In this document: positions 15,574-60,860 of the stretch, piece after piece | Layout of the letters: each line of letters opens with the position of its first letter | How positions within the stretch are numbered: position 1 is the stretch's first letter | Assembly: GCA_047495785.1 (NCBI GenBank) | Contig: JBLDXI010000006.1 | Location: 386,438 to 450,437, forward strand | Reading direction: 5' to 3' | DNA: 64,000 bases | From: Lepidodermella squamata | Taxonomy: Eukaryota; Animalia; Gastrotricha | Notes under the pieces: generated by a model | Told to the model about the DNA's origin: nothing | Database searches by the model: none | The model's input: only the letters and a program-made list of their open reading frames with translations | Translations under genes and position numbers: made by a program

Positions 15574-16411
15574 TCAATTGCAAAAGTCACGGTCGTCACA
15601 AATACATGTCGTAGTCGGGCCTGTTGTCCCACCATTCACCACCCTACATCCTAGCGAATACTGCACTCCAGGAGCTAGGCAAGACTTGGCCGTTAGACTG
15701 CGACCAGCAGCCACCTCAATCTCCGCCTTCTGACACGCAGCACATCCATCTTGCTCAGTGAATTTTGCTGTCGATAGGCCAACGTGGCATTTCAAGGTTT
15801 TCCCAGCTACAGCAACTGCTTCAGGCTTCATATTGCTATTACACAAATCTATATCGTTGCAATGGCAAGTCGTTGCCCTGCCGTAGTCGGACTTGGAAGT
15901 TTCGCAGCCTAATCGATACGGAACACTGCCCATGATACAGAACTTCGCGACAACCGATTGGCCGCTAGAATCCTCTGAGAACGAACTCTGGCAAACTGAA
16001 CAGCCTTCCTTAACCTCGAAATCTCGATCAACCCCAGCGTAGCATTTCACCCGGCTTTGCTTAGGCGGCAATATCGAATCGGTGTTGCATAAATCGCCAG
16101 AGTTACACGTACATGTTGTCAATGAGCCGCCGTCAGTTCCGATTTCGGTCGCATCGCAGCCTAGTTTGAAGGTAACATTCTCCGGGACGCAGGTTCTTGT
16201 TCGTTTCGATTGGCCGGCAACCTCGGAATGGACGATTTGACAAGCCGAACAGTTGTTCTCTTCAACGTACTTCTCGCCCGAAACTCCGACGTAGCATTTT
16301 AACGATGAAACTAAAAATCAGGAAAATTCAGAAAAAATCGGGAAAAAATCTAGAATAATTACCTGAAATTGAATTAATCACTAGAATTATCAAGGTGAAA
16401 ATAATCCGCAT
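15574..16411 (-). CDS. Secreted protein with three tandem three-finger (LU) domains, Ly6-5 (exons 16411-16363, 16310-15574)
   Basis: Signal MRIIFTLIILVINSIS, phase-1 intron, domains LKCYVG..CTCNSGDLCN, VKCYAG..CHCNDIDLCN, LKCHVG..CICDDRDFCN*. Confidence 0.9.
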
Positions 16412-16552: not shown

Positions 16553-17473
16553 TCAGATTGAATGGGCCCAGTTGACGAGCCACGTTGGCCAGCTGCAGCC
16601 GAGGCGATTGCCGGCGATGAGGATGGTCAGGGCGAGGGTTGTTGCAAACGCTTGAAGGCCCGTGTAAATTGAGGCGATTATTCCGAAAATGTTAGCGCAG
16701 CCGAATGATTGGCAGCCGTAGGTTGCGTTGAGTTCCAGGCCGACGCTGGAGTGATGGCTTGAGAGCAGGAGAGCGAAGCCGATGATGAAACCGATCAAAA
16801 ACACCAATTTGATGCCAACTATGATACAGAAAAAAATTGTTTAGAGAATTTCCAATTTTCGAATTAAATAACAACATTTTTAGTAAAATTCATATTTCAA
16901 GAGATTTCACGGAATTTTATTTTAAAAAATTTCAGAGAATTTGAAAGAATTTGGAAAATTTGGAAAAATTTCACAAAAAACTCAAAAATGTTGGGAATAA
17001 ATTATGAAAAATAATCCTAAAATTGAAATTTGCATTTTTTTAACAAGTTTTTTCTCACCGATAACAGGAATTCGATGGAGTAAGCAATCTTTAACGCCTC
17101 GTCTTTTTGAACAGCAATGAGCCAAATGTAAAATTCCTTCAAGAACTCCGAACAGGAAGCAGACGATGAATGTCAGTAAGAAAAGCGTCGCATCGCCTCG
17201 GACGTAGCCATGGTGCGCTAGAAACCAGCCGATTTTAATGCAAGTCAGGCCGATGAGATGCGGCAAATGGCTGATGAAACTCGCCGTATCGCAGCAACAT
17301 TTCGGCCGATTATCGATTTTATTATTAGATCTTCGATTGTTGCTAATGTCCATTTGTAGCTCAGAGTCGGAGCAATCAGGGTTGACAAGAGTTAACGGCT
17401 CGAGGGCTGAGCTTTCACTGGCATTAGTTGGTAGCTTCGTCATTTCAGTCGATTCAACTGCTGGTGCTTCCAT
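16553..17473 (-). CDS. Unassigned 4-TM membrane protein A (exons 17473-17059, 16818-16553)
   Basis: Four hydrophobic segments, family motifs LPHLIG, VRGD, EG, YGCQSFGCANI, IIASIYTGLQ. The phase-1 intron joins in frame. Confidence 0.85.
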
Positions 17474-17881
17474 GATATTTTTTGGAGCGACGAAAAATTC
17501 AGAAAAAAATCGCAAGCACGCGATTTGATCAGGCCACTATACTGTCTAGCTATTAATTTTTAACTGAAAAATTGTGGTATCTCGTGAGAGAGAAAATAAT
17601 TACTGGAGAAATGCACAGGGTATTCACCACTTGATGCCTGGGTGTTTGAACAGGTGTTGAGGTATGACTAACGCATGTGGCGCCTATTTATTTATCTTGC
17701 GGCATTTTGTGGTCCGAATACTAATCAGAAATTGTTTTCCCGCTTCGGCTTGTGCAAAACCAGCTTGACAAATTTATTTTTCAAATTAAAAAGCAAATGA
17801 GTGGGTGACAAAAAATACGAAAATATTCAGAAAATTGACATTGAAATTTTAGAGAAAACAAAATTAATTGCACCACAAAAG

Positions 17882-18162
17882 TAGAGGTTCCAGCACTAAT
17901 TATCATTTGACCTATACCTATTGTGATTTATTATTTTAATAACCTGGTACCATCAGCCAGTTTGAAATTTTTTCCAAATCGGTTTTCTAGATAGCCGATA
18001 TCGGAAAAATCACTTATTTCTAAAATCGATACTTGAAATCGATATCGGCAAAAGTGTGATTCAAAAACTTAAGTATAGACTCAATCGATTTTAAAATTTT
18101 TTTAAGGAAGACATGAAACTCAAAAATTCGTATTTCAATGAAATTTAGTGCTGGAACCCTAA
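17882..18162. mobile_element. MITE of a family dispersed through the window
   Basis: Termini tagaggttccagcactaa and ttagtgctggaacccta. The internal motif gatatcggaaaaatcactgattt..aatcgatacttg(g/a)aatcgatatcgg recurs near 20240, 22975, 41122, 43885, 45630 (reverse), 53123 and 53300 (reverse). Confidence 0.65.
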
Positions 18163-18238
18163 ATTCGGGCGCCCACGGCATTTGCAGAGTAGACAAAGTA
18201 GAAAATTAAGGATCGATTGTTGTCCGCATTTATTTTTT

Positions 18239-19599
18239 TCAGACGAAATTAGCAAATTTGAACCAGCGTGATTGTGGCGCGCAGCAGTTACGACCGCACA
18301 GCTGAATGGCTAGGGCGAAGGTGGTGATGACGCCGCGTGGGAAAATGTAGAAGAGCGCGATGATAGCCATGATGTTGGAGCAGCCGAAGGTGTTGCAGCC
18401 CCATTGCGGCATCATAGGCGCGCGGCTTGATGTAATGAGTGCGATTAGCAGCAGCACAGTTCCAGCTGTGAAGCCGATTAGCAGAAACACGAGACGAGCA
18501 ACTGGGAAAAGTTGTAACAAAATTAATTAATAAAATTAATATTATAACAAAATAATTTTGATTATAAAAAATCCGAAGAAATTTGGTCTAACCGGCAAAA
18601 ATACAAAAAATTACCAAACCAGTTACCATCTGGATTTTTCGGTAATTTTCGGTAATTTCTTCGGTGGAATTGCGAATAAAAGATTATCCCTGTAAGTTTA
18701 ATTTCAGAAAAATGAATAAATTTGCTGCAACAGTTTGCAAAATTTGAAAATGATTGCGGAAATTTCAGCGTGTCCCATATAAGCAAAGAAAATACCCGGA
18801 AAATGGTTCAAAAACCCTAAACTGAGAGACGAAGTCACATCTCATGGCCAGAAAATTTTCAGAAAAATTAAAGGAAAATCACGAGAATAGTAACTATGCT
18901 TGTCACTCATTAATGGGATTAAAAAGTCTAGAGACGTTTGATAAACCGGGTAAAATACCGAAAAATTACCGAACCAGTTACCATCGGGTTTTTCCGGGTT
19001 TTCTCCTGTAATTTTTTTTATTTCTTCGGTTAAATCGCGGATAAAAGATGGAATATGTTCTCCGTGGGCTAAATCTAATAAAAATTAGTTGAACTTCCTT
19101 TAAAATGTTGCCAATTAAAAATGAGTTGCGCTAATTTTGAGACGCGCTGTATGATTTTATTGTTATAAATTGAAAAAAATCCCGAAAATTACTGGTAGCA
19201 AATTTTATGAAAATTATTTGGAAATTGTTTAAAAAATTTACTTCTCACTGGCCGTAATTTGAGTGGATTATTGCGACACCGCGTGCATCGCAGAATGCAG
19301 GTCACCAAATTGTAAAGCGCCTCACTGAGTCCAAAAGCGATGCACACAATGTAGGCAATCTCGAACAGCTTTGGATTGCCGCGAACAAACCCGCGCTCGC
19401 ACAGTATAAGGCCAACCTTGACGAAAATCATGCCTATCAAATGCGGCAGGCCATGGAGTAGGAAATGCTTAGGACTCGCGACAAATTTGCATCGCCTCGT
19501 TCCATCATCCTGTTCGATCGGCGGCTTTTCAGGGTTTTTCTGCTGCTCATCGGAAATTTGGTCCGTTTTACGGACATTTTCAGCGTCTTTTTCAACCAT
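18239..19599 (-). CDS. Unassigned 4-TM membrane protein B (exons 19599-19242, 18501-18239)
   Basis: LPHLIGMIFVKVG, VRGN, WGCNTFGCSNIMAIIA. Same phase-1 intron position as A. Confidence 0.85.
18766..19149. repeat. Dispersed repeat / probable MITE in the intron of TM-B, with a related copy near 46840-47130
   Basis: Short imperfect TIR cagcgtgtc..gacgcgctg. Shared internal sequence gagag(a/g)cgaagtca..tcatggccagaaaa and ttaccgaac..catcgggtttt. Confidence 0.55.
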
Positions 19600-20861
19600 T
19601 TTTCAGGTAATAATTTTTGTATGAGATGAAAGCGAGTAGAATGAAACCAGCCTACGACGCAACCTGGATCGGTCGCCGAGCTTTTGTTACTCTTTTATAT
19701 TTAGCGCGGGTGTTTACTAAACGCCGCTGTTACAATATTATATAGACTCCATTCAACTGAGTAGTATAAGTATACGAATACGCAGCCTGTGATGATGTAT
19801 ACCGTTGCGTATCACTGCCTGTGCATTATACATAGCTCGCGTGATGACATCAGCGCAGTCGCATACGCTCTTTTTTTTATTGACGATGAGGTTATCAGCA
19901 GGTGTTAACTAGGCGCTAATTGAAGCAGCACGATGGTGTGAAAAACGCTTCATTGTATAGAGTTCCCATCATATCTGAGGGTATTAGGTGGTATGGAAGG
20001 CCAAAAACTACTACGAGGTGTCAGTTTTTTCGAAACAACACATTACCTCACTGACAATCACCATTCATATTACCAAATTTGAATAAAAGTAAATTTGATT
20101 ATTCCAGCAGCTTTATCCGATTTATCCGATCTATTCTTGATAATCGATGAGGGTAACCCTAATATAGGATTATATATTTTAGCATCGTAGTATCATCAGT
20201 TGGGTAGAAACACGATGAATATTATCTTTCATCATTGTTGATATCTGAAAAATCACTGATTTTCAAAATCGATACCGAAAATCGATATTGCCACTATTAA
20301 TCGCAAACTATGTAACAGAGCGTAGTTCCTAGTTCCTAAGTAGTTGCATGAGTAATTTTCTGAAATTTCTTGGAAAAATAAAAAAATCCAGATAAAAAAC
20401 TGTGAAAATACGACGTAATTTCTTGATGTTTCCTGAATAAATAAATAAATATTTAAAAATGAATTATTAATTAATAATTTAAAAATCCGAATTCCCTATA
20501 TCACTCTTAGAACACGGCGTAATTTACTGGGAAAATGTAAACAAAAATAGATTTCTCTGCATATTTGGTGCCAGGTTTTGAAATTTTTTAAAATTTGGCT
20601 CGATATCGGAGTTTTTTTATCTTCTGGCCATAGCGCAAATTCGCACTTGAATGGAAATTTCAGAGAAGCCTGTAAATTGTAGTTACACCCTAATTTTTTT
20701 ATTCATTCAAAAACAAATAATAATAATAAATCCAGGCAATGCAAAGATGTAATAGTAGACTAGTACTAAAATCCTAAACAATAAATCCACAAAGTTCGAG
20801 TTAAGACTCGAAAAAGTTGTTCGCTATTCGGTAGCTGTTAGCTGTACATGGTCGTCGTTTG

Positions 20862-21258
20862 TTACATCATCCACCTAGCTGCAAGTAAGAGACCAGTAAG
20901 ACCGGTCACACTCGCCTGCACCGCCCTATTACCGCTGTTGCACAGGTCTTTATCCTTGCAGTAACATTCTTCTCCTGTCTCGACGGTTTTACAGCCAATT
21001 GTAGCCTTCGTGGCGTCATCGCCACTTAGACATTTCTTTATCTCCTTTTTGCCGCTGTCGACAAACTTCTTGCAAACATCACACGGCGATTTCTCCTTAG
21101 CTTCGCCTTTGTCATCCGTTTCGTAACACTTAATTTGAGCAGCATCTTAAAAATAAATTAAAAATTCAAGAAAAAATGAAATGTTAAATCTTACAGATTT
21201 TTGAGGCGATAAGTGCGAATAACAGGGTGGCGAAAATTATTACAGTAGGAGAATTCAT
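20862..21258 (-). CDS. Ly6/three-finger protein 6, highly charged (Lys/Asp/Glu-rich), predicted GPI (exons 21258-21195, 21145-20862); absent from the ORF track
   Basis: MNSPTVIIFATLLFALIASKI|YAAQIKCYETDDKGEAKEKSPCDVCKKFVDSGKKEIKKCLSGDDATKATIGCKTVETGEECYCKDKDLCNSGNRAVQASVTGLTGLLLAARWMM*. Confidence 0.88.
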
Positions 21259-23215
21259 TTTCCTGTCGTAGAAAAATAAAAGCTGATTTTCGATAATATA
21301 GAAATGAAAATGGCTGAATATCAAAATTTTTAGGCGTCATTGGCAATCGTAATTACACCATCTGCTGTTCGTTTTATCGCGTTTCATTTGATAAGAAAAT
21401 TTTTCATAATTATAATATATTGCCTTAGTTGTAATTTTAGTCAGCGGGCGGATTTTTGGTCGGAGGCCGCCAGGCCGGAGACCAAAATCCGCCAGCTGAC
21501 TAAAATTGCAAATAAGGCAATATACTTATTATCACCCATCTGCGACTTGTCCTAGTAGTAATCCGCGTCACGACGGAAAAGAGACTGATTTTTTTTCCTT
21601 TGGACTAAGACACGTGGACTTCGTAAACATTAGTAGGGCTTCATTTTTCCGAATTTTGATTCGAAAGCTACTAGCATGTTTTAAGCTGAAATTTGGAGGT
21701 TTTAATAGATTCTTTTTAACCGAAGGTGGCAAGAACGGCTCAAGTTCAGGTATTTTCAGTAATTATTGAGGTTTCAGGTGATGTAGATTGTCAGACCTAG
21801 CTCTACATTATCTACTGTAAATACAATTCCGTTTTTTGTTTAAATACAGTTTTAGGCGATAAATTTCAGTTGCCATCAAGCTGCTCCTAAAATTTATAGA
21901 GGGATCTAACCCTATTACTCTTTCCGGCCTGCAATTCGATATTCATGGCATTGCTATTGATTTCAAATTAAAGCACCAGCTGATCGAAAATTGGCAATTG
22001 GCAAATCCAAAAATTTTGATCACTGATAACAACGTTGAACAAATTAATCTAAAATGAATGAGAACGGTATCTTTTCCTCAAACCTGTTCTAATCTCTTGA
22101 ATTCTGGAATTATTCTGAATCTCTGCGTAGAAAACGGGGTGAATTGTATAAGTCAAATTGGAACGAATTTTTGTCTTGATTCAATATTGAGCTCTATATT
22201 CTATTAGCCAAGCCATTTTAGTTAATTTTTTGCTATTTTCAACGTGGCCTTTTACCTTTACCTAAGCCAGGAATTTGTTGTATTTTCGCCATTTTCGCCA
22301 TTTTTTCCTTAACCTATTTTTGTGTCTTGTCTTTTTTTGGGTTGTCTTAATTTTTGCTCTGCCATCTGACGGCTACTGAGTTGACCTTCGTTCGAGTTAA
22401 GACAAATCAGACCGGCGGCTCGCTCATAAAATCCGCCGGTCTGATTTTAATCCGAACAATGGTCAACACAGTGGCCGACTGATTTTAGGACCAAGGCAAA
22501 AATATTTTCAGAGGGGTGATAATTTCTTATACCTGCTGTCAATAGCCACTTTTCATTTGATTTTGATATGACACATGTTGCATTTTGGTGGGCGCGAAAT
22601 TTGTATAAATAATTCTTATCGGCATTTTGCGATATTTGTGCGCTATTATCAAAATTTATTCGCGGAAATTCCGAACACATGTCAGTCGATTATTACAGCT
22701 AAATTAGTTTTGCAATAATGCATAATGACCGCACGACTTTTCAGCGGTGACGTTTGAGCAAATGCTCGTCAATGCATCAGTGTCGATTTTCTAATTAAAT
22801 TAGGGTGCGAATATTAAAATGTGATACCAACACTAAAATGTCCCGATAATTTTCCCTTATCGGCTTTTTCGTTCTTTGATGCCTCACCTGAGCCTGGGAT
22901 TTCTCATATTTTAGCTACAAATGCCCTAAGCTATGTAGGAAAATTAGGTATCAATGTTGCGTTCCAAGAAGGCTGATATCGGGACAATCACTGATTTATA
23001 GTATCGATACTTGAAATCGATATCGGCTTTGCAGGCTGAATAACTGACCGTTCAATGATTTTCAGTGATGTTTGAATTTTATTAGATTTAAAATTAACAA
23101 GTCATTCTTGCTAAATTACGCTGAAAAATAGTTTTTATTTTTATTAATGGATTTCTGAATAACCAAAATTACAATTTGCCTATATTTAAGTTGATCAACC
23201 TGGTTTTTTATCAAA

Positions 23216-23741
23216 TCAAAAATTGACAAATTTCCAAATAATCGTAGCAAATATCGCCATTATTGAAGTGATAGTAGTTTTCATTATGATAATCGACGGA
23301 GATGCGTTGCATAGGTCACGGCTGTTGCAGTAGCAAATTACTGTGTCGATGCCGCCGGCCGAGGTCGTGCGGCACTCCATGGCCAAATTATAGGCAAAGG
23401 GCAGACAGCCTTTGACGACGCCGGCATTTGACCCGCCACTGACGAGCGTTTTCGAACACGCCGCGCAATTAACCACTTCTACTATTGACGTCTTACTAGA
23501 GCCGTAATAACACCGTATTGCCGCTGAATAAAAATAGTCAAAAAATTAAGAAAAATCGCAAAATAAATAATTCGCTGAATTTAAACACTGAGAATTAAAA
23601 AGTTAATTTAATTTGGATTTTTTTAAATAAATGAAAAGTGATTTTATTTTCCTTTAATTTAATGAAAAAATATTAAAAAAATAACCAACCTGTTAGCGAG
23701 AATAGGAGCGAGAAAACGAACAAGAACGCTTCTTTTTGCAT
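23216..23741 (-). CDS. Ly6/three-finger protein 7, predicted GPI (exons 23741-23690, 23523-23216)
   Basis: MQKEAFLFVFSLLFSLT|AAIRCYYG..CAAC..CYCNSRDLCN and a hydrophobic tail. Confidence 0.88.
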
Positions 23742-24044
23742 TTTCTTTAATTTCGAATAAAAAACCCGATAATACCTAATGCTAATATAATTCGCAGCTC
23801 TATATAAAATGTCGCGTAATATTTGACTATTTATTGTGCTGGTAAACAGTCTCGCGTGTTCCGCGGTCGTGATTTTGTGCTGCCAAGTAAATACCTGGAA
23901 ATGTCATCTATATTACACCTAACAACCTGGCTGGCAAATCGAGCGAAACGCCCTGCTTGAAACGAAAAAAATGATTCTCAATAATTTATTAATTATAATA
24001 ATTTAAAATCACAGAAATTAAATTTATAATTATTTTTCAATTGT

Positions 24045-24704
24045 TCAAAGATGATGCGCCCATTTGTAGAGACTATGCGGGATGTTTGGCCAAATGCGCT
24101 GCCCGCCGAGTATGATTGACAGCGCGAAGAAGGTGACGAAAATTTGAAGACCGGTGTAAATTGAAGCAATAATCGCCATAATATTAGCACAACCGTAATC
24201 GTTACAACCGTAAACCGGGCTGAATGCAACTTCAGCTGTCTTGTAGTGGCAAAACAGCAGCAGGGAAAATCCAACAATATAGCCGACAAAAAACACCATT
24301 TTCGCAAAAACTTGGGAAAATAAAATAAATTATTTTATAATATTTTAATTAAGTTTACCTATCGCTCTGATGTCGTAAAGGCAGCAATTTTTCACCTTTC
24401 TCCGTCTAGCGCAACATTGAACAATGTGAAGAATACCCTCGGCTATTCCGAAAACGAAGCAGGTGATGAAAGTGACGATAAATAGGATTCGATCGCCTCG
24501 AACGAGTTCTTTATGAGCGAGTAGCCAGCCGACTTTGATGCTGGTCACACCGATGATGTGAGGTACGTGAGGTAGGACATCACTCAAGCGGCAACATCGC
24601 CCATCAGTTTCGTTCTCATTCGGAGGATGAGGATCTTCGCTGATTTCCAACGTCAGCGATAAATCATCGTTGACCAACTGCTCAGCTAAATTACCGCCAG
24701 CCAT
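24045..24704 (-). CDS. Unassigned 4-TM membrane protein C (exons 24704-24359, 24310-24045)
   Basis: VPHIIG, VRGD, YGCNDYGCANIMAIIASIYTGLQ. Closest to A. Confidence 0.85.
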
Positions 24705-25220
24705 TTTTTTGACTACAGCACTAACACACCTGTGGTTGTTGTAATACGGACGATAAGGCGGTAATTTTCTTATATTGTAAAACAATATAAATGTTATTAG
24801 TATGCGATTTTGCAATTAGCTCAGCTTTCAGCCGCGATACGGGCGTGCGAAAAAAGTGCGTGGCCGCGTTTTGACGTCGCGTATCATTATTATTATTATT
24901 CGCGGAAAATTGACACGTGTTTTTTGCGTCGTTCCACCCTAAATTCCTATAAAGCGAAATAATTATACGCTAATATATCGCTTTCTTTTATTTTATCCCG
25001 TCAGATTCAATTATCAAAATATTTTTTTCATATTCCTAAACTTGAAAAAATCAATTAATATTGAAAATTTAATTAAAAAAATTAATTATGATAGAATTAT
25101 TTTGCACAATTAAATTTTATTTTCTCGAAAAAATTAAGCATTTATCTTTTCAGCTCTCCAAAAACGTTGTTGAGCCCGAGTATTGTGGTATCGAGAGTAT
25201 TTTGTTTACTTTTTTGTTCT

Positions 25221-25926
25221 TCAGAAGGTTTTAGCGAAATTAACACAGCAATCGCCGCAATTGCAAGCTTTTTCGCACAGTAATACGCAAATTGCGATGA
25301 GAGTCACGACTCCTCGAATGATTTCGTACAATAGCGCGATGATGGCCATTATATTGGAACAGCCGAACGAATTGCAGCCGTATTTTTCGTCAAAGGCGAC
25401 CTTCGAACTGGAAAATAGAGCGGCAGCTAACAGGATGGTCGAAGCGGCAAAACCGAGGAACAGCACAAAATTCACCACAACTAAAAAAATTATAAAAAAA
25501 ATAATAATATTAAATAATTTAAAATCTTTCAATTTTCAATTTTTTTATATTTTTTGAAATTTTTGAAAATTAAAATTTTTAATTACCTTTGACCCATCTG
25601 ATGTTGAACGGATTTTTTTGAACGCGTCTGACTTTGAGAATGCATTTGATGAGATTAATCAGCGATTCGAGAATGGCGAAAATTATGCAAATTAAATAGG
25701 CGAGGCGGAACATTTTGTGATCGCCGCGTAGTTGGCCCTGCTCGGCGAGGATAAGACCAGCTTTAACGAATGCCATGCCGATAAGGTGCGGCAATTTATG
25801 CAGCAGCGCGTCTTTAGGATCCATGCACGCTTTCAAATCGCATTTCGACTGAGATTGCTGCGGTTGCTGTTGTTGCTGATCAGCTGAGCGTATTTCAATT
25901 CGAGATTCACCTTGAACTTTCGACAT
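25221..25926 (-). CDS. Unassigned 4-TM membrane protein D (exons 25926-25587, 25480-25221)
   Basis: LPHLIGMAFVKAG, LRGD, YGCNSFGCSNIMAIIA. Closest to B. Confidence 0.85.
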
Positions 25927-26708
25927 TATTTTACGGGGGCGATTAAAAGATATTTAATGTATTTTTAATGAATGAAGACTAGTAGTAGCAAGCGTCGTGC
26001 TGCTGCCGATTGCGCTTCTTAGGCTGAATACGGACGACAGAACACGAAGCTATAGGATACTACGAAGGCTTTTCCTATGAAGGCCAGTGATTTTTTTTAT
26101 TACATGCGCGTGTTTATTTACCATTTTTTTCTCCTGCGGCAGTGTTCTTTGTTTACTCAGCAGGCTATAGGATAATGAAATATATGGGAGGCTGTATAAC
26201 TGGAGGCGAAGTCGCCAGTAAGCTTTGTTTGCACTATGAACCAATACTTCGTTATGAGTTGTCGCTCAGTCGGTTAAAAAAACCGCACCCCTCAACGACC
26301 AATCGGTAGTGAAAAAAGAAAATCTGTAAGAAATGATCAACATTTCAAAGGAAGGACACGAAAAGGCCTTAAAATAAGGAGTTTTGGCCTTAAATTAAAA
26401 TAAGGATTCCTAAAATTCAGGAATCAATCCTGATCCTGTACAATCGATTTTCAGGCATTGAAGATGATCAGCAGTTGATTTTTTAACATAGCATGGCTAT
26501 GCGTCACTTGATTCTCTCATTCCCATGATTTTTCATATATGTCTATGCCTAATTTCGCGGGAATTAACCCCGCGCGCAAAAAAACGTTAGTCACTAGGCA
26601 TGTCACCGCGTAATAAGCATAATTTGGCACTTGGCCGAGAGAGCAGGGAAGGTACGTTGTATAAATAATACATACCTTGCAAATTACTCTGTTCCGGTTT
26701 TGGTAAAT

Positions 26709-27485
26709 ATGGCGCCAACTGCTGCGATATCAACCACAATCGTTCTTCTTTCAATCATCGCATCAACAGGTTTCAACAATTTATCACTTGTCTAAGATGT
26801 CCTCTTCTGGGATAATAAATAAATAAATAAATTATTCCAATTTAACTTGTCGATTTCAAAATATTCGATCATTTTCGAAGTGCGTCTAGTAATAGGTGTT
26901 GTTCGAGGAATTTCAGAAATCGACTTCGAGGCAATTTGTTCAAAAATTCTAGTTTTTACTGTTTAGCATATTTCAGACATGACCGAAAGATTGGAAGATT
27001 CATTTAATTCAATACCTAACCATTTTATTCAGCTATTTAACTGGCTAGGGTTAGGTTAGGGTTAGAGGCTGGGTCTTAAAATTAGGGACTTGGAAGTGAT
27101 TGGTACAGACTTCAATGATAATTTGGTAATGAATCCGCTATATCCGCCGAAAGATTCGAGTAATTTCTGTTGTTGTTCTTCCTTAGTCGCTCTGAAGTGT
27201 CATGCCGGTGACAGTTCGTCGAGTTTCAAAGAAGTAGACGGGTGTAATGTGTGTTCGAAATCAACAGCAACAGCCGGTACGACATCGATGGTTGTCAAAG
27301 CGTGCCTGAATACGTCATCAACGGTTCGCATGGAATGCTCCACTGTCATGTTTGGCACTTACAAAACCGTACTGTGCTACTGCAACGAAAAAGACTTGTG
27401 CAATGGCTCTAACTTTGCAGCTTCATCTGTATCCATTTTAGTTTTATTTATTGTTACAGTCATATACTACAGCATATTTGATTGA
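26709..27485 (+). CDS. Ly6/three-finger protein 8, predicted GPI (exons 26709-26769, 27187-27485)
   Basis: MAPTAAISTTIVLLSIIAST|VALKCHAG..CNVC..CYCNEKDLCN and a hydrophobic tail. Confidence 0.88.
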
Positions 27486-27873
27486 TTAATGTCGGTTACG
27501 CTAATCAAATAAGAATAAAGACATAGTGCACCTTAGATAGACACATTTTCTTGTCAATTTGTCACCTCGAAGCTCCGAGGCCTTCTTCAATAGGGTTTCC
27601 GATAAACTTGAAGAATGAATCCCGTCAAATCAATTATCAGCCCTTGAAGAAGGTAGCAGCTGATTTTTAACTTAGCATAGTTATGCATAACTTGGCGCTC
27701 TCATTCCCAAGCTTTTCCGTAGTTCTATGCCTAATTTCGGGTAAATTAACCCCGCGCACAAAAAAACGTTAGTCATCCGTCATGTCACCGCGATAGAAGC
27801 ATAATTTAGCGCTTGGCAGAGGTATTCCTTTTTCAATACATACCTTGCATTTTCTGTTCTGGCTTTTGGAAAT

Positions 27874-28394
27874 ATGGCATCAACTGCGGTACCAATCTCT
27901 ATTGTTCTTCTCTCAATCATCGCATCAACAGGTTTCAATGACTTATTCGATGTTATTTATGCAAATTGAAGTCGAAAATTGAAATTGTCTCGTAAAGTAG
28001 TAAGTATTGTCCGAAAAATTCACGAGAGCTATTCTAGTTTAACTTTTTTGGCAGTTTTTAGACAATATAACGGACCTTTCTGTTTTTCTCGTCCATAGTT
28101 GCTCTGAAGTGCCATGCCGGTGATAGTGCGTCGAGTTTCCAAGAAGTAGACGGTTGTAATGTATGCTCGAAATCAACAGCGACATCCGGTACGACCACGG
28201 CGGTTGTCAAAACGTGCCTGAATACAAACTCCACTGTTCGCATGGAGTGCACCACTATCATGCTCCTCAACTACAAAACCGTAGTGTGCTACTGCAACGA
28301 AAAAGACTTGTGCAATGGCTCCAACTATGCAGCATCATCAGCATTCATTTTAGCTACTTTTATCGTTACGGTCATCTACGGCATATTTGCTTAA
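27874..28394 (+). CDS. Ly6/three-finger protein 9, tandem duplicate of Ly6-8 (exons 27874-27931, 28099-28394)
   Basis: MASTAVPISIVLLSIIAST|VALKCHAGDSASSFQEVDGCNVC..CYCNEKDLCNGSNYAASSAFILATFIVTVIYGIFA*. Upstream region 27645-27870 parallels 26460-26705. Confidence 0.88.
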
Positions 28395-28935
28395 TTATTG
28401 ATAGTTACTACATCATTTAATCGGTTCATGCAATCAACAAATAGAAATAAAAACGCATTGCAGCTTAGTTACACGCATTTTCTTGTTACTTGCCACCTAA
28501 CACGGAAACTGTCGAAGCTCTGAGGCAATTATCAAGAGGTCAACATATTTGTACCACGAAAAAAGAGGTTCCAGCTTCTAGCACTGAAAGTTTACTGATT
28601 CTCTGCGAATTCGACTATTTCGTTTTTCAATCGATTCTGAACTTGGGATTTGCCATCTTAGCTAAATGGTGGCCTACGGTATGTAGAAGATCGGTGTTGA
28701 GTTACAAGGCGGTTGTAAACTGATAACTGATTTGTAAAATCGCTACTTGAGATTCCAGTCAAGTCGTGAAACTTGAAAACCCATATTTTGGGGGAATCAG
28801 TCCCATTATAGGCTACCCAGATTTTTCAACAACTTGAAATCTGTAGGCTTTACTTTCTGCAACATGTTGTTCACTGTTATCTATCCAATACTCAGACCAA
28901 ATAGTGTAATCTCAACATAGCACTGCTCCCATCGT

Positions 28936-29084
28936 TCACGTCGCGGAAAAACTCGCAGAAGTGTGTTTTTTTCTGACTACTGTACATTTGAGTACGGTTG
29001 GCTGAAAATTCCATTCCTCTTACACTTACTGTACCCAGTGTACAGTCGGACCTTTTCCGAAGTGCGAGTTCTTCCGCGACGTGA
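28936..29084. mobile_element. Small MITE / palindromic element (about 150 bp)
   Basis: TIR tcacgtcgcggaaaaactcgca and tgcgagttcttccgcgacgtga (one mismatch). Confidence 0.65.
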
Positions 29085-29503
29085 TTGTAATAGTTTTGAT
29101 CCTAACGAAATTCGATAATTTGCGTAGACCGTTATGAAGTTCTGCCGCTAGCCTGTTTATAGGTGTTGGCCCCTGGGCCGAGACACGATTATATCCGGTG
29201 CTTCCCTATAAAGCTAAAGCGCCTACTTGCTAATTTGGCTCAAACATGGTCCGGAAAGCTGAGCTAATAAAATTATCCGCATAATGACATCGCGTGACTC
29301 GCCTGAATAGAATACAAACAAATGGCGTAAAACTAACTTATCGCCACGTTGGCCAGAAAGCCAGATTTTTCTTTGAATAAAAAACACTGCGCCTTCAGTT
29401 TCTATTCTATGTGAGTCGTTATGACGCCCACCCCTCGATATGAACTGCCTCGAATGCCTCGAATAGATTTCTTGAATTTGTCTATTTTGAGGTGCTGGAC
29501 AAA

Positions 29504-30136
29504 ATGGCTGAGATAACACATATTCAGGCTAACAATTTAGCCATTTACTTAATCGACGATGAATTACCGCTGACCCCTGAAGCTGACCAGAGCAAAAGAC
29601 GATGTTGCCATTTGAAAGATTTCCTGCCTGTTATACCGCACTTAATCGGCTCGGCTTCCGTTCTATTGGGAATGATTTTCTGGCGAAAAGGACTTTTTCG
29701 AGGCGATAAGTTCATGTTTCTTGTCACTTTTCTCATTTGCGGCTCATTAGCAGTCGAAGGCCTGATTCATATGTATCAAGGTTTGGTTAAGAGGCGGATT
29801 TTGGGCACTTCCTGTCCATACGGCACAAAAATTATTATATGTGAGAATTTCCCTTGCATGAATATTGCAATTCAAATTAGTTTGATTATTCTTTCAGTTG
29901 TCACTAAACTAATTCTTTTTGTTGGCCACATTGCTGGATTCACCTTGCTGCTTTATTGCCAAAGCTCATATTACGAATGCGGCAATTATGGTTGTTCTAA
30001 CGTTGTGGCGATTATCGCGTCAATTTACTCCGGTCTTCAAATTATCTTCACTCTAGCTGTTACTTCAGCTGTCGTGCGAATGCGCTGGTCGAATAGCTTA
30101 CTTGAAGCGTCAACGATTTGGCGCGTTACCTTGTGA
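29504..30136 (+). CDS. Unassigned 4-TM membrane protein E (exons 29504-29840, 29898-30136)
   Basis: IPHLIG, FRGD, ECGNYGCSNVVAIIASIYSGLQ. A 57-bp GTGAG..TTTCAG intron at the family-conserved position is stop-free and in frame. Confidence 0.85.
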   Translation: MAEITHIQANNLAIYLIDDELPLTPEADQSKRRCCHLKDFLPVIPHLIGSASVLLGMIFWRKGLFRGDKFMFLVTFLICGSLAVEGLIHMYQGLVKRRILGTSCPYGTKIIICENFPCMNIAIQISLIILSVVTKLILFVGHIAGFTLLLYCQSSYYECGNYGCSNVVAIIASIYSGLQIIFTLAVTSAVVRMRWSNSLLEASTIWRVTL

Positions 30137-46428: not shown

Positions 46429-48127
46429 ATCGCACGAAATAGGTATCTAAAATTATGTAAAAAATCTAGACGAAAGTAATAACTGAACATGTTTGTTTGT
46501 TGAAATTATGAGTGGTCAATTTTCCCACGTATTAAATAATTAAGAAAAAGCGGGGTAATAAATAATGAAACACCCAGCAGCTCGAAACTGATCTAATTCG
46601 ATCTGGACAATTTTCGACACTCTGTGGACACCCTGTTTTGTGTTACGCAATATTGACAAGCTGGCGGACATTTTTTTTTAAACATAGAAGTGTCCCGCTG
46701 CCAAACTCTTTAGCCGCTTTAAATCGAGAAGTGGGTTAATTTGACTATCTTTAAATTAGCCCTAATTATAATCCTTAAGACACCACTTCTGCCCTGTTGC
46801 ATCATCGCCTAAAACAGGCAGGGTCGGAAAAATTAGAGAAACTACACGGGAAAAGGTTCAGAAATTTTAAAATGAGAGGCGAAGTCATAACTCATGGCCA
46901 GAAAAATTAAACAAAAATGCAGAATTTCATGTGAATGGTAATGAATTATAAATGAAATTTAATAAAAATCCGGAGAGATTAGGCCCATTACCGAGAATTA
47001 CCGAACAGGTAAACATCGGGTTTTCCCGGGTTTTATTCGGCAAATTTGTGGATAAAGAATGGGTTCAATTTCAAATATCGGTTCAATTTTCTAAAAAAAA
47101 ATTGCGCCACTGATGGCACACGCTGTATAGAGTAATTCCTTATTGCACAATCGTGGAAAATTGACAATCGAGGAGCATTTTAATTACTAATTTTTGACAA
47201 CGTACAATTCCTCGTGTTATATAGCGGTTTAAACATACGGCGAACGATTTTGTCCCAGTTCGACGCCAGGTTATAGGAATATTTAGGAGAGAAATAACGG
47301 AAAAAGCAGGACAAAGTCCCTATTTCGGTTGTACTAAAATCATGTCGCGAAAAATTTACGCTGGTCTTCAAATGGTCGCCACTATTCTCGCGTTATCAAT
47401 CATGTTTCAAGAGCAGCGAATAATGTATCGAATTATACTCACTTGATAGGTGTATATATAAATGTTGGCGCATGACCTAGAAAAAGCTGAGGTCGCGTCA
47501 ACACGCATGATTTAAATTGACTTATTTTGCACGGGTTGTAACGGGTATTCGATGTTTTTATTTCGATGAACATATTCTCAGCTTGTCAATGTTTAGTAGC
47601 CGGTATTGTGTTTTTCATTTGGCAGCGCCCTCGAAAATTGGTCAAAAGTGAGACTTGGGCAAATGTAACAAAAATGTTGGTCAAGTGGCTATTTCCGAAT
47701 AACCGGACAGTTTTAGTACCTAATTAAAATTCAAAGAATTGTCATTCCATAGAATATAAGGATCTTGCGCGAAATAATTAGTTGCGCGCATATTAAGTGT
47801 GCGCGAAATGTCGCGAGCACTAATTTTATTGGGTACGCGTACAACAACTTTTTCCCATCAATATTTTCGCGCATCGACCTTATACTCAATCGATAGAGAA
47901 TTTCCTAAATTTTTATTTGACATAAAAACCGCCAGATTATTCGAAAGTAGCTATTTGACATCAGTCCAAAATGTCCCGAAAAATTAGGAAACCAAAAACT
48001 CAATAATTGCTTTCAATAATTGTCGTAACATTTTACTTGATAATTTAACAAAATTAGCGAAAATTTTACATCATTTCATACAATTTTTTGGTATCCATAT
48101 AGATATCAAATTATTATAATTTGTATT

Positions 48128-54548: not shown

Positions 54549-56308
54549 GTTGTAGTATATAGTATAGCAACGCTATAGTACCAGCATAGAGATCAGATTA
54601 ACCAGAGAGGAAACTGATGCAGAAAAAATTCTTTAAACATTAATTTCGCATTATTTTCATTAAAGAGGAATTTAAATATTATTCGCCGCCTTCGAGCTTA
54701 GGGAAAACATCAAATTTAGTCATCAGGTTACTCGAATACATGATTAAAAAGCATACTACATAATTCCTCGTCCCAAAAGTAGGCATACTAGACCTAAAAA
54801 CCGATCGAGATGACAATAAATAGTTTAATGTCAGTTTTCGCGATGTGAAACAAAAATATGCAGGTTCTAGGTCATCGGAAATAATTTGGAATTAAAATTC
54901 CTCCTTAAAAAGCTCGCCGACTTTTTGCAGAAAACTTTTGCATCGAGTTTCCTCTCAGGTTGATCTCTATGAGCACTAGGAAAAAATGCATGCACTGAAT
55001 GATGAAAGATGTATATTACTATTACCTATGCAGCAAACAGTAGTATACCTAGGTCAAAACTGCATTTTTTGCCGTGAGTATATTCAATAAATGGCAGTCG
55101 TGTCATTCATAGTTTCGTGAGTTATTAATGAATGCACCCATGTGTGACCACGCCCGGAATATGAACTATCGCCAAAACAATGACAATCGTCAATAACGAA
55201 ATTTGGTCAAACCATGTCTGACTGAGGTTTTAGAATTCAGTTTGACCTCGAAGGTGCACAGGTGGGCTATGTGATTCATCATCATCTTCCTACAAAAGTT
55301 ACTAGAAACTTGTTTACCCTATTCTGGCAAAAGCTCAACATGTTTGGCTGGATTTGAAATTTTGTGGCGCCCATTATTTGTATATTTCCGTGCAACAAAT
55401 TACCCAATTTAAGAGCACCGACCTTAACGTTTTCAACTAAGTTCTGACCTCACCATGAGAACTCGGGTTTTCATTCGATTTCAGAAAATAGAGACCTAAG
55501 GGGAGAGTATGCCGACTTTTATTTTAATGTATTTCAGCTTCATAAAAACATTAAGGAAGACCCAGAACGATATTATTGCTGATTATTGCTTGCTAATATT
55601 CCTAAAATTCGGTTCTCCTCTACTTTGATTTTAGAGGTCTAACCACGCTGATGAAGTTTACGCGGAAAACATCACTTTTATGCCGCTCAACCCAAAAAAT
55701 CCTTACGTTACCGAACAACTCCTCGAAATTGGAGCTGAGCCATTTGAGAAGAATTTCCATCCGCCACCTTGGCCTCGCCGTCTCTTTATCAGCCGAAGTC
55801 ATGAAAAAGTCGATGGTAATGGGAAATGAATTGTTGTTGGAATAGCGATTTCTGGGTTTTGGTCTTGAAAGGTTGGCTACTTTACCCTTAAAAACCTGTG
55901 CGAAGCTTTGATTTGTGCATCTCTTGCCCCAAATGGACTGATGAGAGAGATAAGAAACTCGATAATGAATTCAGAGTCAAACTGCCAGTCAAGGAGTCAG
56001 GGAGTCAGTAAAGCTTTCCAGATATTTTTAAATTTCGCAGTTAATAGAAGTTAGGTAACCGTAAAAGAGTGTAAATCGATTGTGGCGCTGGCTTATAATA
56101 ACAATTCTACTCGGTTATTCGTAAGGATTTGGGTCACACCTTGCATTGAGTATAGAACAGCGTAGGCAAGTTGAAGTTCGATAATTATCGACTGTTACCA
56201 TGGAACAAAGACCCACCTATGGCCAGTAAATGCCGCTATAGATATCGCACTAAGATTTTTGCTATGCAACACCTATGCCACCTTAATCCCTAACCTAACA
56301 CTTCAATT

Positions 56309-58168
56309 ATGGCTTGGAAATCTCTGGACGTTTGCCACGTGGAACGGGTAATCGCAAGTGGTGATTTCGGGGACGTTTTACTTGTACGAAAGCGTCATGA
56401 CAGACAGCTGTATACTCTCAAGGTGATAGAGAAACTCGATAAGCCAATCGAAGAACTCGGCGATCGAGGCTATATCAATTACATTGAAAGGATGAATGAT
56501 GAAACTGCGCTGCTAGTCGCTCTAAATCATCCTAACATCATTCGAATTTTCGGCAGCTTCCTCGACGGTCAGAAGCGGTATCTAGCTATGGAGTTCTGCG
56601 AGTCAGATTTCGCTAAGGAAATCGCTTTGGCGCGAAATGATCAACGTCGAATTTCGGAGAACAACGTCTACAACTGGACGAAACAAATCGCCTCAGCAAT
56701 AGGTTACATCCATGACGCTGGCGTCATACACGGCAACATAAAACCAAGTGTTAGTTGAAACTGATTCGTAAAGCTAAGTATAAACTGAATTTAAAATTAT
56801 AGAATGTCTTGCTCAAAACCAATGGGAATGACTCGAAAAGATCGCAAATTGTTCGTTTGGCTGATATTCAACTTGGAAATAGGTAATTTTTTCATTCTAC
56901 AGTTTTTACTACTCCAATAACTGGAATCGATAATCTTAATCGATTTTTCCTATAAATGGGTTCTAATCCAAAGCCTTTTTTTAGGCGTTCTTCTGGATTT
57001 GGTACCTTTTTATACTCCGCCCCTGAAATCCTTCGAAAAGAGCCGAGCTCGAAGCACAGCGATATATGGTCATTTGGTTTAACAATCTTTGAATTAGCAA
57101 CTCTGACGCCTATGGTAAGCTCTGCTTTCGAGTGATTTGACTCAGTATCAATCTCTCTTTCCTTAGATTCAAGACGAGGCAACGATTTTAGATGAAATTT
57201 CGTGTTTTGAGTCAGTAACTTCATCTCGGATGGAGCTGAAATCTGCTGGATTGAAGCAAGATCTTGTCGCTTTTCTTGATTCAATCATCAATCCAGCCCC
57301 TGAAAAGCGACCGAAAATCTCCGAAATTCTCAACCATCCCTACCTGAATGACCTTCCTAAGCTGTTTATCAGTTACTGCTCGAAAAATAAGGATCAAGTC
57401 ATAGCCATTCGAGACCGCCTTTTCGACTGGCATTTCGACGTTTGGATGGATGATCAAGCGAATTTAACGGACAGTATGGCTGACGCTATCGAACAGGCAA
57501 GCGTTGTGCTTCTTTGCTACAGCAGCGATTACGCGAAAAGCCGGAATTGCAAGGCTGAGGCTGATTACACCCTGCGACTGGACAAACATTTCATCCCGCT
57601 GAAGGTTCAGTCGAGCTACGAACCGAGAGGCTGGCTTGGCATCATGATCGGCAACTCAACAATACAAGATTTCAGCGAAAAGTCGAACTTTGAAGAATCT
57701 TTTGATCGACTAGTCGGTTTTTTTAGGAAGATCGGGCGATACCCCTTAAAATCATCTCGAACGTTTTCATCAATGAGACGAGAGAAATCAATCCTGTCAG
57801 GTGGACGAAAGTCTGGAACTTTCGTGAAAAGCGTAACTTTGTTAACAGGCGATGATGACGATAGAGACGAAGATGAGGAGGAACAAGAGTTGACTCGACT
57901 TGGCCCGACGCCAAAAATAACGAAAATCACGCAAGGACCTGGGTTTATAATGGCGCAAATGCCGCGTGTTGAAATCGGCGCTAGGTCGCAACTTCGGTCG
58001 GAATTCGCGAGAGGTTCGCGACTCGAACGGACCTTACTTGGGCCGAAACTTGAAGATGCCCTGATACCACCTTACGGCAAGTTCGGAGTGATTAAAACTA
58101 CTTCGAAAACATTACCGCCAGTATGGATACAGCGTAAAATGAAAACACTCAATGACTTGAAGCAATAA
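56309..58168 (+). CDS. Pseudokinase-TIR fusion protein, 550 aa (exons 56309-56749, 56803-56882, 56985-57114, 57167-58168)
   Basis: Spliced kinase fold: IASGDFGDV, YTLK, LNHPNII, HGNIKPS|NVLL, LADIQ, GTFLYSAPE, SDIWSFG, PEKRP. Directly followed by a TIR_2-like domain LFISY..VWMD..MADAIEQASVVLLCYSSDYAKSRNCKAEADY..IPL..GWLG. All three GT-AG introns keep the frame. Confidence 0.92.
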
Positions 58169-60860
58169 AATTGTTGTTCCTTAAATTAAATGGAGAGTTA
58201 GTCGTATATAGTATCATATGCGTTGTATTCAACAGTTTTCGATTCATATTCAGCCGCGTTGCAGTCGGACACGCATCCGTAGTCACAATGTGCAGGTGTC
58301 AATCCGCATCGACCTTGAAACAGAGAAAACAGTTTTTACCCTCAAAATCCCAATGAACCGAGTCTATACGTTATGTTAAGGTCTTAGGACTTTTGGGAAA
58401 GTTGTGAAATTGGAAAAGTCACGATTCCCAGTGTGCGAAGTACGGAGAGGGGGACGGGTGACAGGGGGTACCCGCACTTTAAAAGGTCCAGGTAAGAAAA
58501 CCCAATAACCTCTGGGGGAACCCTTGGTTCAGATGAAAAATACCCACTTACTACCACCTCAAGGATCCTATACTTAATCGATTGCATATTTCGGAACAAT
58601 TTAGATCCATAACATTTGGGATGTGCCCATGGACACCCTTCCAACGTCAAAAACAAGAAATTCCTGGGATTGATGCCGAGAAGCTATTCCATTTGAATTA
58701 TATGAATGTGATTTGAATGTTACCGTATTGGCTGCAACAGTAGCCATTTTGACAAGGCTGCCCTTCGCCACATTCTCTGTTTACATCCTTAGCGTCGCAC
58801 TTGCTTTGACAGCCCGAGCCGCAATGAGCCTCCGTGTACCCGCAGTAGCCTATTAAAATGTTCAAAAATTACTGTAGTTTGAAAAATCTCTTCTAGCGAG
58901 TGTGTCCCTGGATAAAGGAAACTTTTAGAGGAATTAGGATCTTGGCCAACAATCTAGTAAAGTTGTAGGCTATTTTTTCGAATTACCGTACTTGCTGCAA
59001 CACGCCTGCGGACACGGCCGGCTAGATGAACAAGTGGTGTCATCGGAAGAATCAACTAAAAGGCTGTTGGAAGCAAAAGCCAACAGCAGGAAAAACACTC
59101 TTTTAGGAAACATAATTCAAACGATTTTATCTCGCAGACAACTTAAACAGCCGGTACTATTCTGTGATTAAAAATTCCTAAAACGTTTCTTCCATGGAAG
59201 CATATACATATGATCACATCCTCTTATGTAATTCAGTTATAATCATTAATTTCATCCCCTCGTGAAACACATAAAAAGACTATGGCAACGATTGTGTGGG
59301 ATTTGCGGATGATTTAGCAGATTGAACCCTAGACAACTTACTCGTGCTACGCCATTGACGCCAGAAGGTCAGTAGATTCATAAGTGATTGGAAGTCAATA
59401 AAAAAATATTCGATTATTTTTTTGCTGGTTTCGAGACCGTTCCGATTTTCCCGCGTTTGATTGATGGATTCAGAAAGAGGTTTCGAAACGGTTTGATTGA
59501 ATATTGAAGATTGAAGCTATCTAGGCGAAAGTTGATATTTGAACCCTAAATTCAGCCTTGGTTATCGTAAGGATTTCCTACAGGCAAACAAATCGAAAAT
59601 GATGTTCACCTTACCTCCAAGCACTGATGAATGATCTGATCTCTCATGGTGTAGTACCCGTTTACTCGCGAATAAACAGTCTACAGTAAATTATGTCTAG
59701 GATTCAATCTGCTAAATCATCCGCAAATCCCACACAATCGTTGCCATAGTCTTTTTATGTGTTTCACGAGGGGATGAAATTAATGATTATAACTGAATTA
59801 CATAAGAGGATGTGATCATATGTATATGCTTCCATGGAAGAAACGTTTTAGGAATTTTTAATCACAGAATAGTACCGGCTGTTTAAGTTGTCTGCGAGAT
59901 AAAATCGTTTGAATTATGTTTCCTAAAAGAGTGTTTTTCCTGCTGTTGGCTTTTGCTTCCAACAGCCTTTTAGTTGATTCTTCCGATGACACCACTTGTT
60001 CATCTAGCCGGCCGTGTCCGCAGGCGTGTTGCAGCAAGTACGGTAATTCGAAAAAATAGCCTACAACTTTACTAGATTGTTGGCCAAGATCCTAATTCCT
60101 CTAAAAGTTTCCTTTATCCAGGGACACACTCGCTAGAAGAGATTTTTCAAACTACAGTAATTTTTGAACATTTTAATAGGCTACTGCGGGTACACGGAGG
60201 CTCATTGCGGCTCGGGCTGTCAAAGCAAGTGCGACGCTAAGGATGTAAACAGAGAATGTGGCGAAGGGCAGCCTTGTCAAAATGGCTACTGTTGCAGCCA
60301 ATACGGTAACATTCAAATCACATTCATATAATTCAAATGGAATAGCTTCTCGGCATCAATCCCAGGAATTTCTTGTTTTTGACGTTGGAAGGGTGTCCAT
60401 GGGCACATCCCAAATGTTATGGATCTAAATTGTTCCGAAATATGCAATCGATTAAGTATAGGATCCTTGAGGTGGTAGTAAGTGGGTATTTTTCATCTGA
60501 ACCAAGGGTTCCCCCAGAGGTTATTGGGTTTTCTTACCTGGACCTTTTAAAGTGCGGGTACCCCCTGTCACCCGTCCCCCTCTCCGTACTTCGCACACTG
60601 GGAATCGTGACTTTTCCAATTTCACAACTTTCCCAAAAGTCCTAAGACCTTAACATAACGTATAGACTCGGTTCATTGGGATTTTGAGGGTAAAAACTGT
60701 TTTCTCTGTTTCAAGGTCGATGCGGATTGACACCTGCACATTGTGACTACGGATGCGTGTCCGACTGCAACGCGGCTGAATATGAATCGAAAACTGTTGA
60801 ATACAACGCATATGATACTATATACGACTAACTCTCCATTTAATTTAAGGAACAACAATT

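Follow-up and report, generated by a model that had tools for sequence, protein, structure and literature searches.

We identified a family of small four-helix membrane proteins encoded in the genome of the gastrotrich Lepidodermella squamata. Five paralogous genes of this family, designated A through E, lie in a 64,000-nucleotide stretch of contig JBLDXI010000006.1 (assembly GCA_047495785.1, positions 386,438 to 450,437 of the forward strand). We refer to this whole stretch as the window and number positions from its first nucleotide. We are nearly certain that the genes and the family are real. By every sequence test that we ran, the proteins fall outside the CD20, tetraspanin, claudin, and MARVEL families, and in modeled shape and topology they most resemble CD20 and sarcospan. 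Within the reach of the data, given the sparse sampling of gastrotrichs and the single profile iteration that was run, we consider it likely that this is an undescribed family that occurs only in this animal and its kin.

An earlier note, made from the letters of the window alone, had proposed five paralogues of about 190 to 225 amino acids that share one phase-1 intron and a set of motifs. Gene models were built with a script that scored each GT..AG pair compatible with an open frame and kept the best pair. The list of open reading frames (ORFs) and the sequence itself yielded all five genes where the note had placed them. Each has two exons, and the products are 191 to 226 amino acids long. 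The models are as follows, with slashes marking the exon–intron junctions.

16553..17473, minus strand: gene A (A type), 226 amino acids; exon 1 17059-17473, phase-1 intron 16819-17058 (240 nt; donor G/GTGAG, acceptor CATAG/TT), exon 2 16553-16818.
18239..19599, minus strand: gene B (B type), 206 amino acids; exon 1 19242-19599, phase-1 intron 18502-19241 (740 nt), exon 2 18239-18501.
24045..24704, minus strand: gene C (A type), 203 amino acids; exon 1 24359-24704, phase-1 intron 24311-24358 (48 nt), exon 2 24045-24310.
25221..25926, minus strand: gene D (B type), 199 amino acids; exon 1 25587-25926, phase-1 intron 25481-25586 (106 nt), exon 2 25221-25480.
29504..30136, plus strand: gene E (A type), 191 amino acids; exon 1 29504-29840, phase-1 intron 29841-29897 (57 nt), exon 2 29898-30136.

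The best-scoring GT..AG pair agrees in every gene. It places the intron at a common phase-1 site, after a basic, Cys-rich loop and before the third transmembrane helix (TM3), and TT follows each acceptor. Alignments of the two exons show that all five genes contain the motifs that had been listed: PH(L/I)IG (TM1), RG(D/N) (first loop), an invariant Glu in TM2, C-x2-(F/Y)-G-C-(A/S)-N (second outer loop), and IIA..Y (TM4). Gene B has RGN instead of RGD and a Cys-rich C-terminal tail. The intron of gene E is in frame and free of stop codons, so the entire gene is a single ORF. The TM2/TM3 intron of a distant relative (L047:844-897, 54 nt) has the same property. Retaining the intron in either gene would merely lengthen the cytosolic loop by 18-19 residues. 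In our searches, the window genes were queried exon by exon and no spliced protein was used. The sole full-length query from the window was the natural ORF of gene E (29492-30133), which includes 19 intron-coded residues in the cytosolic loop.

A small set of residues defines the family. All 22 exon-1 pieces that we aligned from the genome keep the R and G of the RGD motif and the Glu of TM2, and the loop motif has its C, G, C, and N in each of the 25 exon-2 pieces. The first outer turn is about 7 residues long and bears the RG(D/N). The second outer loop, of about 20 residues, begins with a variable part and ends in a fixed G-C-x2-3-(F/Y)-G-C-(A/S)-N segment that leads directly into TM4. Its two invariant Cys residues, 4-5 residues apart, form a candidate disulfide. 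Across the family, the loop that follows TM2 contains 55 K+R versus 11 D+E, along with 34 Cys, in 234 residues. The outer loop contains 18 K+R versus 47 D+E in 568 residues. This positive-inside bias indicates that both termini and the Cys-rich loop are cytosolic and that the RGD turn and the Cys-pair loop lie on the outer side of the membrane.

Structural models are consistent with this arrangement. We used AlphaFold with an alignment that includes database proteins (A8) to model the intronless relative P0002. The model scored 85.7 in the predicted local distance difference test (pLDDT), with a predicted template-modeling score of 0.71. It has helices at residues 24-42, 50-84, 90-120, and 139-194. 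The RGD motif lies in a 7-residue first loop, and the second Cys of the loop motif falls at the first turn of TM4. A model of gene E built from a shallow alignment was weaker (pLDDT 67.8) and likewise showed four long helices. Together, the models and the charge bias bear out the resemblance to MS4A/CD20 topology that the note had pointed out: both termini of the four-helix protein are cytosolic, the first outer loop is tiny, and the second carries a Cys pair. We rejected the possibility that a two-helix hairpin was duplicated to give the protein: MAFFT superposed the two halves, but their profile-profile probability was 0.7%.

The window genes fall into the two subtypes that had been suggested, A/C/E and B/D. 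Protein identity is 50% for both the A-C and B-D pairs, 38% for A-B, and 37% for C-D, with a range of 37-54% among copies. A maximum-likelihood tree of the exon-2 halves grouped B with D (support 99/96) and recovered the A type (98/91). The tree was built from only 72 columns, and trust in it is limited to these deep splits. Among the window genes, the proportion of nonsynonymous differences (pN) is 0.31-0.45 versus 0.56-0.86 for synonymous differences (pS), and synonymous sites are near saturation. The low pN against a nearly saturated pS indicates that these genes are old duplicates under purifying selection.

The five genes are part of a larger family. The earlier note had described five members, a count that proved too small when we ran half-protein profiles across the entire assembly (G000; 151 contigs totaling 121.2 Mb). 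Queries were the gene E ORF and the exon halves (A5, A6, and A7), followed later by alignment A8. The full-length A8 profile gave 52 exon-level matches, which correspond to about 6 genes on the contig that carries the window (C6), 24 on contig C13, and 1 on contig C7. The genome thus holds about 30 copies, 6 of them close and local and about 25 diverged and located elsewhere. The sixth close copy (C6:381108-381817) is located upstream of the window, about 5 kb from its start. The C13 cluster spans 3.16-3.74 Mb, and the copies on C13 and C7 are more diverged than those on C6. Intron positions vary among the C13 copies. In many of these, the match to the exon-2 profile ends within TM4, directly past the loop motif, which suggests an intron at this place. 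One copy in the genome lacks an intron between TM2 and TM3.

Two observations concern the C13 array itself. Three near-identical copies are arranged head to tail at C13:3720767-3723610 with a period of about 1.16 kb, which indicates very recent duplication in the array. Two other copies on this contig, at 3594158-3594819 and 3602679-3603340, are identical in protein. The window also contains one decayed copy:

47225-47443, plus strand: decayed A-type exon-2 relic (match at C6:433758-433871, E 0.0026; local E 9e-7).

This relic lies about 17 kb downstream of gene E. Its loop motif has lost the first Cys, and no adjacent exon-1 match was found.

We looked for relatives outside this genome with an exhaustive HMMER search, in which the A5 profile was run for a single iteration against 1.84 billion protein representatives. 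Seventeen matches were obtained. Fourteen are true relatives that contain both the RG(D/N) turn and the G-C...G-C-x-N motif, and the other three (P0008, P0012, and P0014) are translated satellite repeats that we rejected. Ten of the relatives were looked up. All of them lack names, belong to clusters of one or two sequences, and derive from ENA metagenome assemblies or Logan runs. Their contigs come from metagenome assemblies ERZ23486787, ERZ27333047, and ERZ27332993 and from Logan runs SRR23086389 and SRR20015794. The run and sample accessions gave no match in the literature that could be searched.

The metagenome contigs carry animal genes, including trypsins, DCX, PLAT, and NAA35. The metagenome NAA35 is 68-77% identical to the copy in the L. 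squamata genome, which indicates that its source is a fairly close relative of a different species. An A-type orthologue is present in this animal (L041, 9512-10264). It contains PHMIG, has an intron at the identical place, and falls within the A-type clade of the tree. Its position shows that the split between A and B types is older than the separation of the two animals. Both Logan contigs are genomic DNA; one reads through the TM2/TM3 phase-1 intron in frame, and the other has an intron inside TM4.

Other searches added little. A word-index protein search returned no match to gene E or to the exon-2 alignment, and the same search with A8 returned only P0002 and an exon-1 piece, P0022. A scan of JGI metagenomes for the loop motif produced five weak loci that we rejected. 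Two (L055 and L057) are spurious bacterial matches, and the remaining three (L056, L058, and L059) share the weak 25-residue match of L057. As far as the databases reach, the family has been seen only in this genome and in a related uncultured animal, in line with the lineage-specific family that the note had inferred.

We compared the family to known membrane proteins, first by sequence. A Pfam hmmscan of 15 sequences (nine window pieces and six relatives) at E values up to 1 returned no CD20, tetraspanin, claudin, or MARVEL match. The sub-threshold rows that it did return, such as FAM176, COX4_pro, DUF4199, and DUF1218, were inconsistent between members and far under their cut-offs, and we set them aside. 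The CD20-like Pfam family, PF04103, had no match above its curated cut-off (27.9 bits) anywhere in the genome; the best match scored 22.1 bits. The family profile matched no PDB sequence at E values up to 10. In the ESM Atlas nothing reached 0.9, and CD20-like clusters were among the nearest Pfam-bearing ones for both queries (0.76 and 0.77). The note's failure to recognize a family thus held up in each of these sequence searches.

The structural comparisons gave a ranking of candidates. For the P0002 model, the best Foldseek rows were synaptogyrin (E 0.06, template-modeling scores 0.40-0.50) and CD20 (E 0.35, probability 0.75). VIA-align ranked sarcospan first, with a Z score of 10.9 (also 10.5) and a fit of 3.4 Å over 151 residues, followed by a uroplakin tetraspanin (9.9), synaptophysin (9.8), pannexin-2 (9.6), PRPH2 (9.2), and FcεRIβ (8.8). 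All of these scores are below the noise bar of about 13, under which helical bundles may share a mere common arrangement. A viral structure library yielded only generic four-helix membrane proteins of giant viruses, none at E ≤ 0.001. The combination of AlphaFold and Foldseek that the note had recommended delivered the four-helix bundle and no significant match; CD20 in Foldseek, and sarcospan and FcεRIβ in VIA-align, appeared only at noise level.

The closest parallels are with the MS4A/CD20/FcεRIβ/sarcospan group (PF04103), of which we take sarcospan to be a member. In both groups there are four helices, the N- and C-termini are cytosolic, the first outer loop is very short, and the second contains a pair of Cys residues. 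The outer loop of the gastrotrich family is about half as long, however, and its Cys residues are spaced 4-5 residues apart and abut TM4. Only the gastrotrich proteins have the RG(D/N) turn, TM2 Glu, and G-C...G-C-x-N motif, and there is no sequence match between the groups. Known PF04103 members function as dimers or as subunits of larger complexes.

The remaining tetraspan families are less similar. Tetraspanins (PF00335) share the four-helix core and juxtamembrane Cys residues, which are palmitoylated in tetraspanins, and the uroplakin and PRPH2 cores gave the noise-level matches listed above. The gastrotrich family lacks the large second extracellular domain, the CCG motif, and a Pfam match. 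MARVEL proteins (PF01284; synaptophysin and synaptogyrin) share a compact four-helix bundle, with generic similarity at noise level only. The family lacks a sequence match, the MARVEL loop pattern, and the conserved MARVEL residues. Claudins and their PMP22 and TARP relatives (PF00822 and PF13903) also have four helices, and Foldseek returned weak rows to TARP γ2. The first outer loop of claudins is about 50 residues long and contains a W-GLW-C-C motif and a β-sheet. In contrast, the corresponding loop of the gastrotrich proteins has about 7 residues centered on RG(D/N), and no Pfam match was found. With this short first loop and a second loop of about 20 residues and two Cys, the family has neither the tetraspanin CCG nor the claudin W-GLW-C-C motif, as the note had observed.

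We tentatively favor a model in which these compact tetraspans would act as oligomerizing adaptors or auxiliary subunits, as MS4A/CD20 or sarcospan do. This is our best guess, ahead of a pore, a chemoreceptor repertoire, and true MS4A descent, and we hold it with less than even confidence. It draws on the modeled shape and topology, the conserved residues, and a natural fusion gene. The juxtamembrane Cys residues would be palmitoylated, the C-x4-5-C pair may form a small disulfide staple on which the variable half of the outer loop is displayed, and the buried Glu could provide a polar contact inside the oligomer or with a partner helix. The fusion gene is on a metagenome contig of the related animal (L044:16457-18316), where three family units are fused in frame into a predicted 12-helix gene. 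Single exons join TM3-TM4 of a unit to TM1-TM2 of the following one, and the linkers contain neither a stop nor a Met. Phase-1 donors occupy the usual place (G/GTGAG, G/GCAAG, and G/GTACT), one of the three being GC instead of GT. Gene fusions of this kind usually unite proteins that already act together, so the three-unit gene provides indirect support for oligomers.

Several results weigh against the adaptor model. The TM2 Glu is replaced by Leu, Tyr, Gln, or Arg in relatives P0004, P0005, P0006, and P0015 and in the L041 A-type orthologue, which has Gln at this site and has also lost the Arg of the turn (TGN). Neither residue can be indispensable. A search of PF04103 against the whole genome at E values up to 10 matched no family locus, and Foldseek returned no match to the PDB at E ≤ 0.001 with either model. 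Every structural match stayed under the noise bar of about Z 13, and ROP and designed soluble bundles reached 9.2-9.3.

Three alternatives to the adaptor model appear unlikely to about the same degree. One is that the proteins form a small ion- or proton-conducting pore whose conduction path is lined by the Glu of TM2 and the Asn at the entrance to TM4. The invariance of this intramembrane Glu in the 22 exon-1 pieces from the genome, the side-by-side units of the 12-helix concatemer, and the presence of pannexin cores among the structural neighbors (Z 8.4-9.6) are compatible with a pore. However, the replacements of the Glu in several relatives include Leu and Tyr, the bundle is tightly packed and has no further conserved polar ladder, and the pannexin matches have root mean square deviations of 6-7 Å, no better than soluble bundles.

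Similarly improbable is a repertoire of chemosensory or ligand-sensing receptors that would bind ligands through the variable half of the outer loop. Mammalian MS4A proteins have been reported to have a chemosensory role. The large lineage-specific tandem arrays, with near-identical recent copies on C13, fit such a repertoire, as does the distribution of variation, which is greatest in the N-terminal tail and the first half of the outer loop and spares the helices. The exposed variable surface is only about 12-14 residues, though, and the saturated synonymous sites preclude a test for positive selection.

We also doubt that the genes are extremely diverged descendants of true CD20/MS4A/sarcospan proteins, which would make this a known family. 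In favor of this view are the shared topology, the place of sarcospan and FcεRIβ among the best-scoring structures, and the presence of CD20 clusters among the Pfam-bearing Atlas clusters nearest to our queries. The PF04103 slot is also empty in this genome, with no match above the cut-off anywhere. Against such descent, two scans of the 15 sequences (E up to 1) and the genome-wide scan of the family loci (E up to 10) found no PF04103 match, the family profile found no PDB sequence (E up to 10), and the structural scores are at noise level.

The weakest alternative, that these are nonfunctional chance ORFs, pseudogenes, or duplication artifacts, draws on the relic at 47225-47443 and on the fit of this genome to a published assembly from multiple-displacement-amplified DNA (PMC11660948), and is largely refuted: the copies share only 37-54% protein identity, which marks them as old duplicates rather than products of assembly, open frames, splice phase, and invariant residues are all kept with pN far under pS, and orthologues are present in a second animal.

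The evidence for A+B heteromers, a possibility raised in the earlier note, consists of gene adjacency. Gene D lies beside gene C and gene B beside gene A, and divergence is matched between the pairs (nonsynonymous divergence, dN, of 0.43 for A-C and 0.48 for B-D). Among the six local copies, only these two A-type genes have a B-type neighbor; gene E and the sixth copy upstream lack one. Several genes with the end motif of Ly6/three-finger proteins are interspersed with the family genes. The motif, C-x-C-x4-(L/F)-C-N, occurs in the window at 15606, 15867, 16113, 20966, 23335, 27375, and 28287 and also beside the upstream sixth copy. The corresponding genes, which have a C-x-C-x4-LCN end and a hydrophobic tail, are as follows.

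15574-16122, minus strand: Ly6/three-finger gene.
About 20966, minus strand: Ly6/three-finger gene.
23216-23476, minus strand: Ly6/three-finger gene.
27090-27485, plus strand: Ly6/three-finger gene.
28163-28394, plus strand: Ly6/three-finger gene.

The Pfam match of these neighbors is weak (QVR family, E 0.005). On the minus strand, the order of genes is D, C, Ly6, Ly6, B, A, and then a three-domain Ly6 ORF. We considered linkage to Ly6 genes as a family-wide rule and rejected it, since the end motif occurs at no C13 locus and on none of the relative's contigs. Restriction of the motif to the C6 copies indicates that Ly6 pairing is a feature of the local cluster and not of the family. It is conceivable, and in our view very improbable, that the C6 branch and the adjacent glycosylphosphatidylinositol-anchored Ly6 proteins would form a two-part surface receptor. 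In such a receptor, the Ly6 protein would bind a ligand and an A/B tetraspan hetero-oligomer would signal across the membrane, and a module of B type, A type, Ly6, and Ly6 would have been duplicated as a unit.

The window also contains a near-perfect 8.9-kb palindrome at 55046-63983. An assembly artifact has to be excluded here, given that this assembly matches one built from multiple-displacement-amplified DNA (PMC11660948). Multiple-displacement amplification is known to yield inverted chimeric reads (PMC13265396).

With these genes, a phylum that has hardly any molecular annotation gains an undescribed membrane-protein family of considerable size. We regard the importance of the finding as moderate: animals that have been poorly sampled can be expected to yield orphan membrane families, and no long-standing open question is touched. 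The motifs are sharply defined (RG(D/N) in the first turn, the buried Glu, and G-C...G-C-x-N capping TM4) and, like the natural 12-helix concatemer, offer handles for experiments. The family illustrates that small tetraspan proteins can arise, or diverge past recognition, and then expand in tandem arrays.

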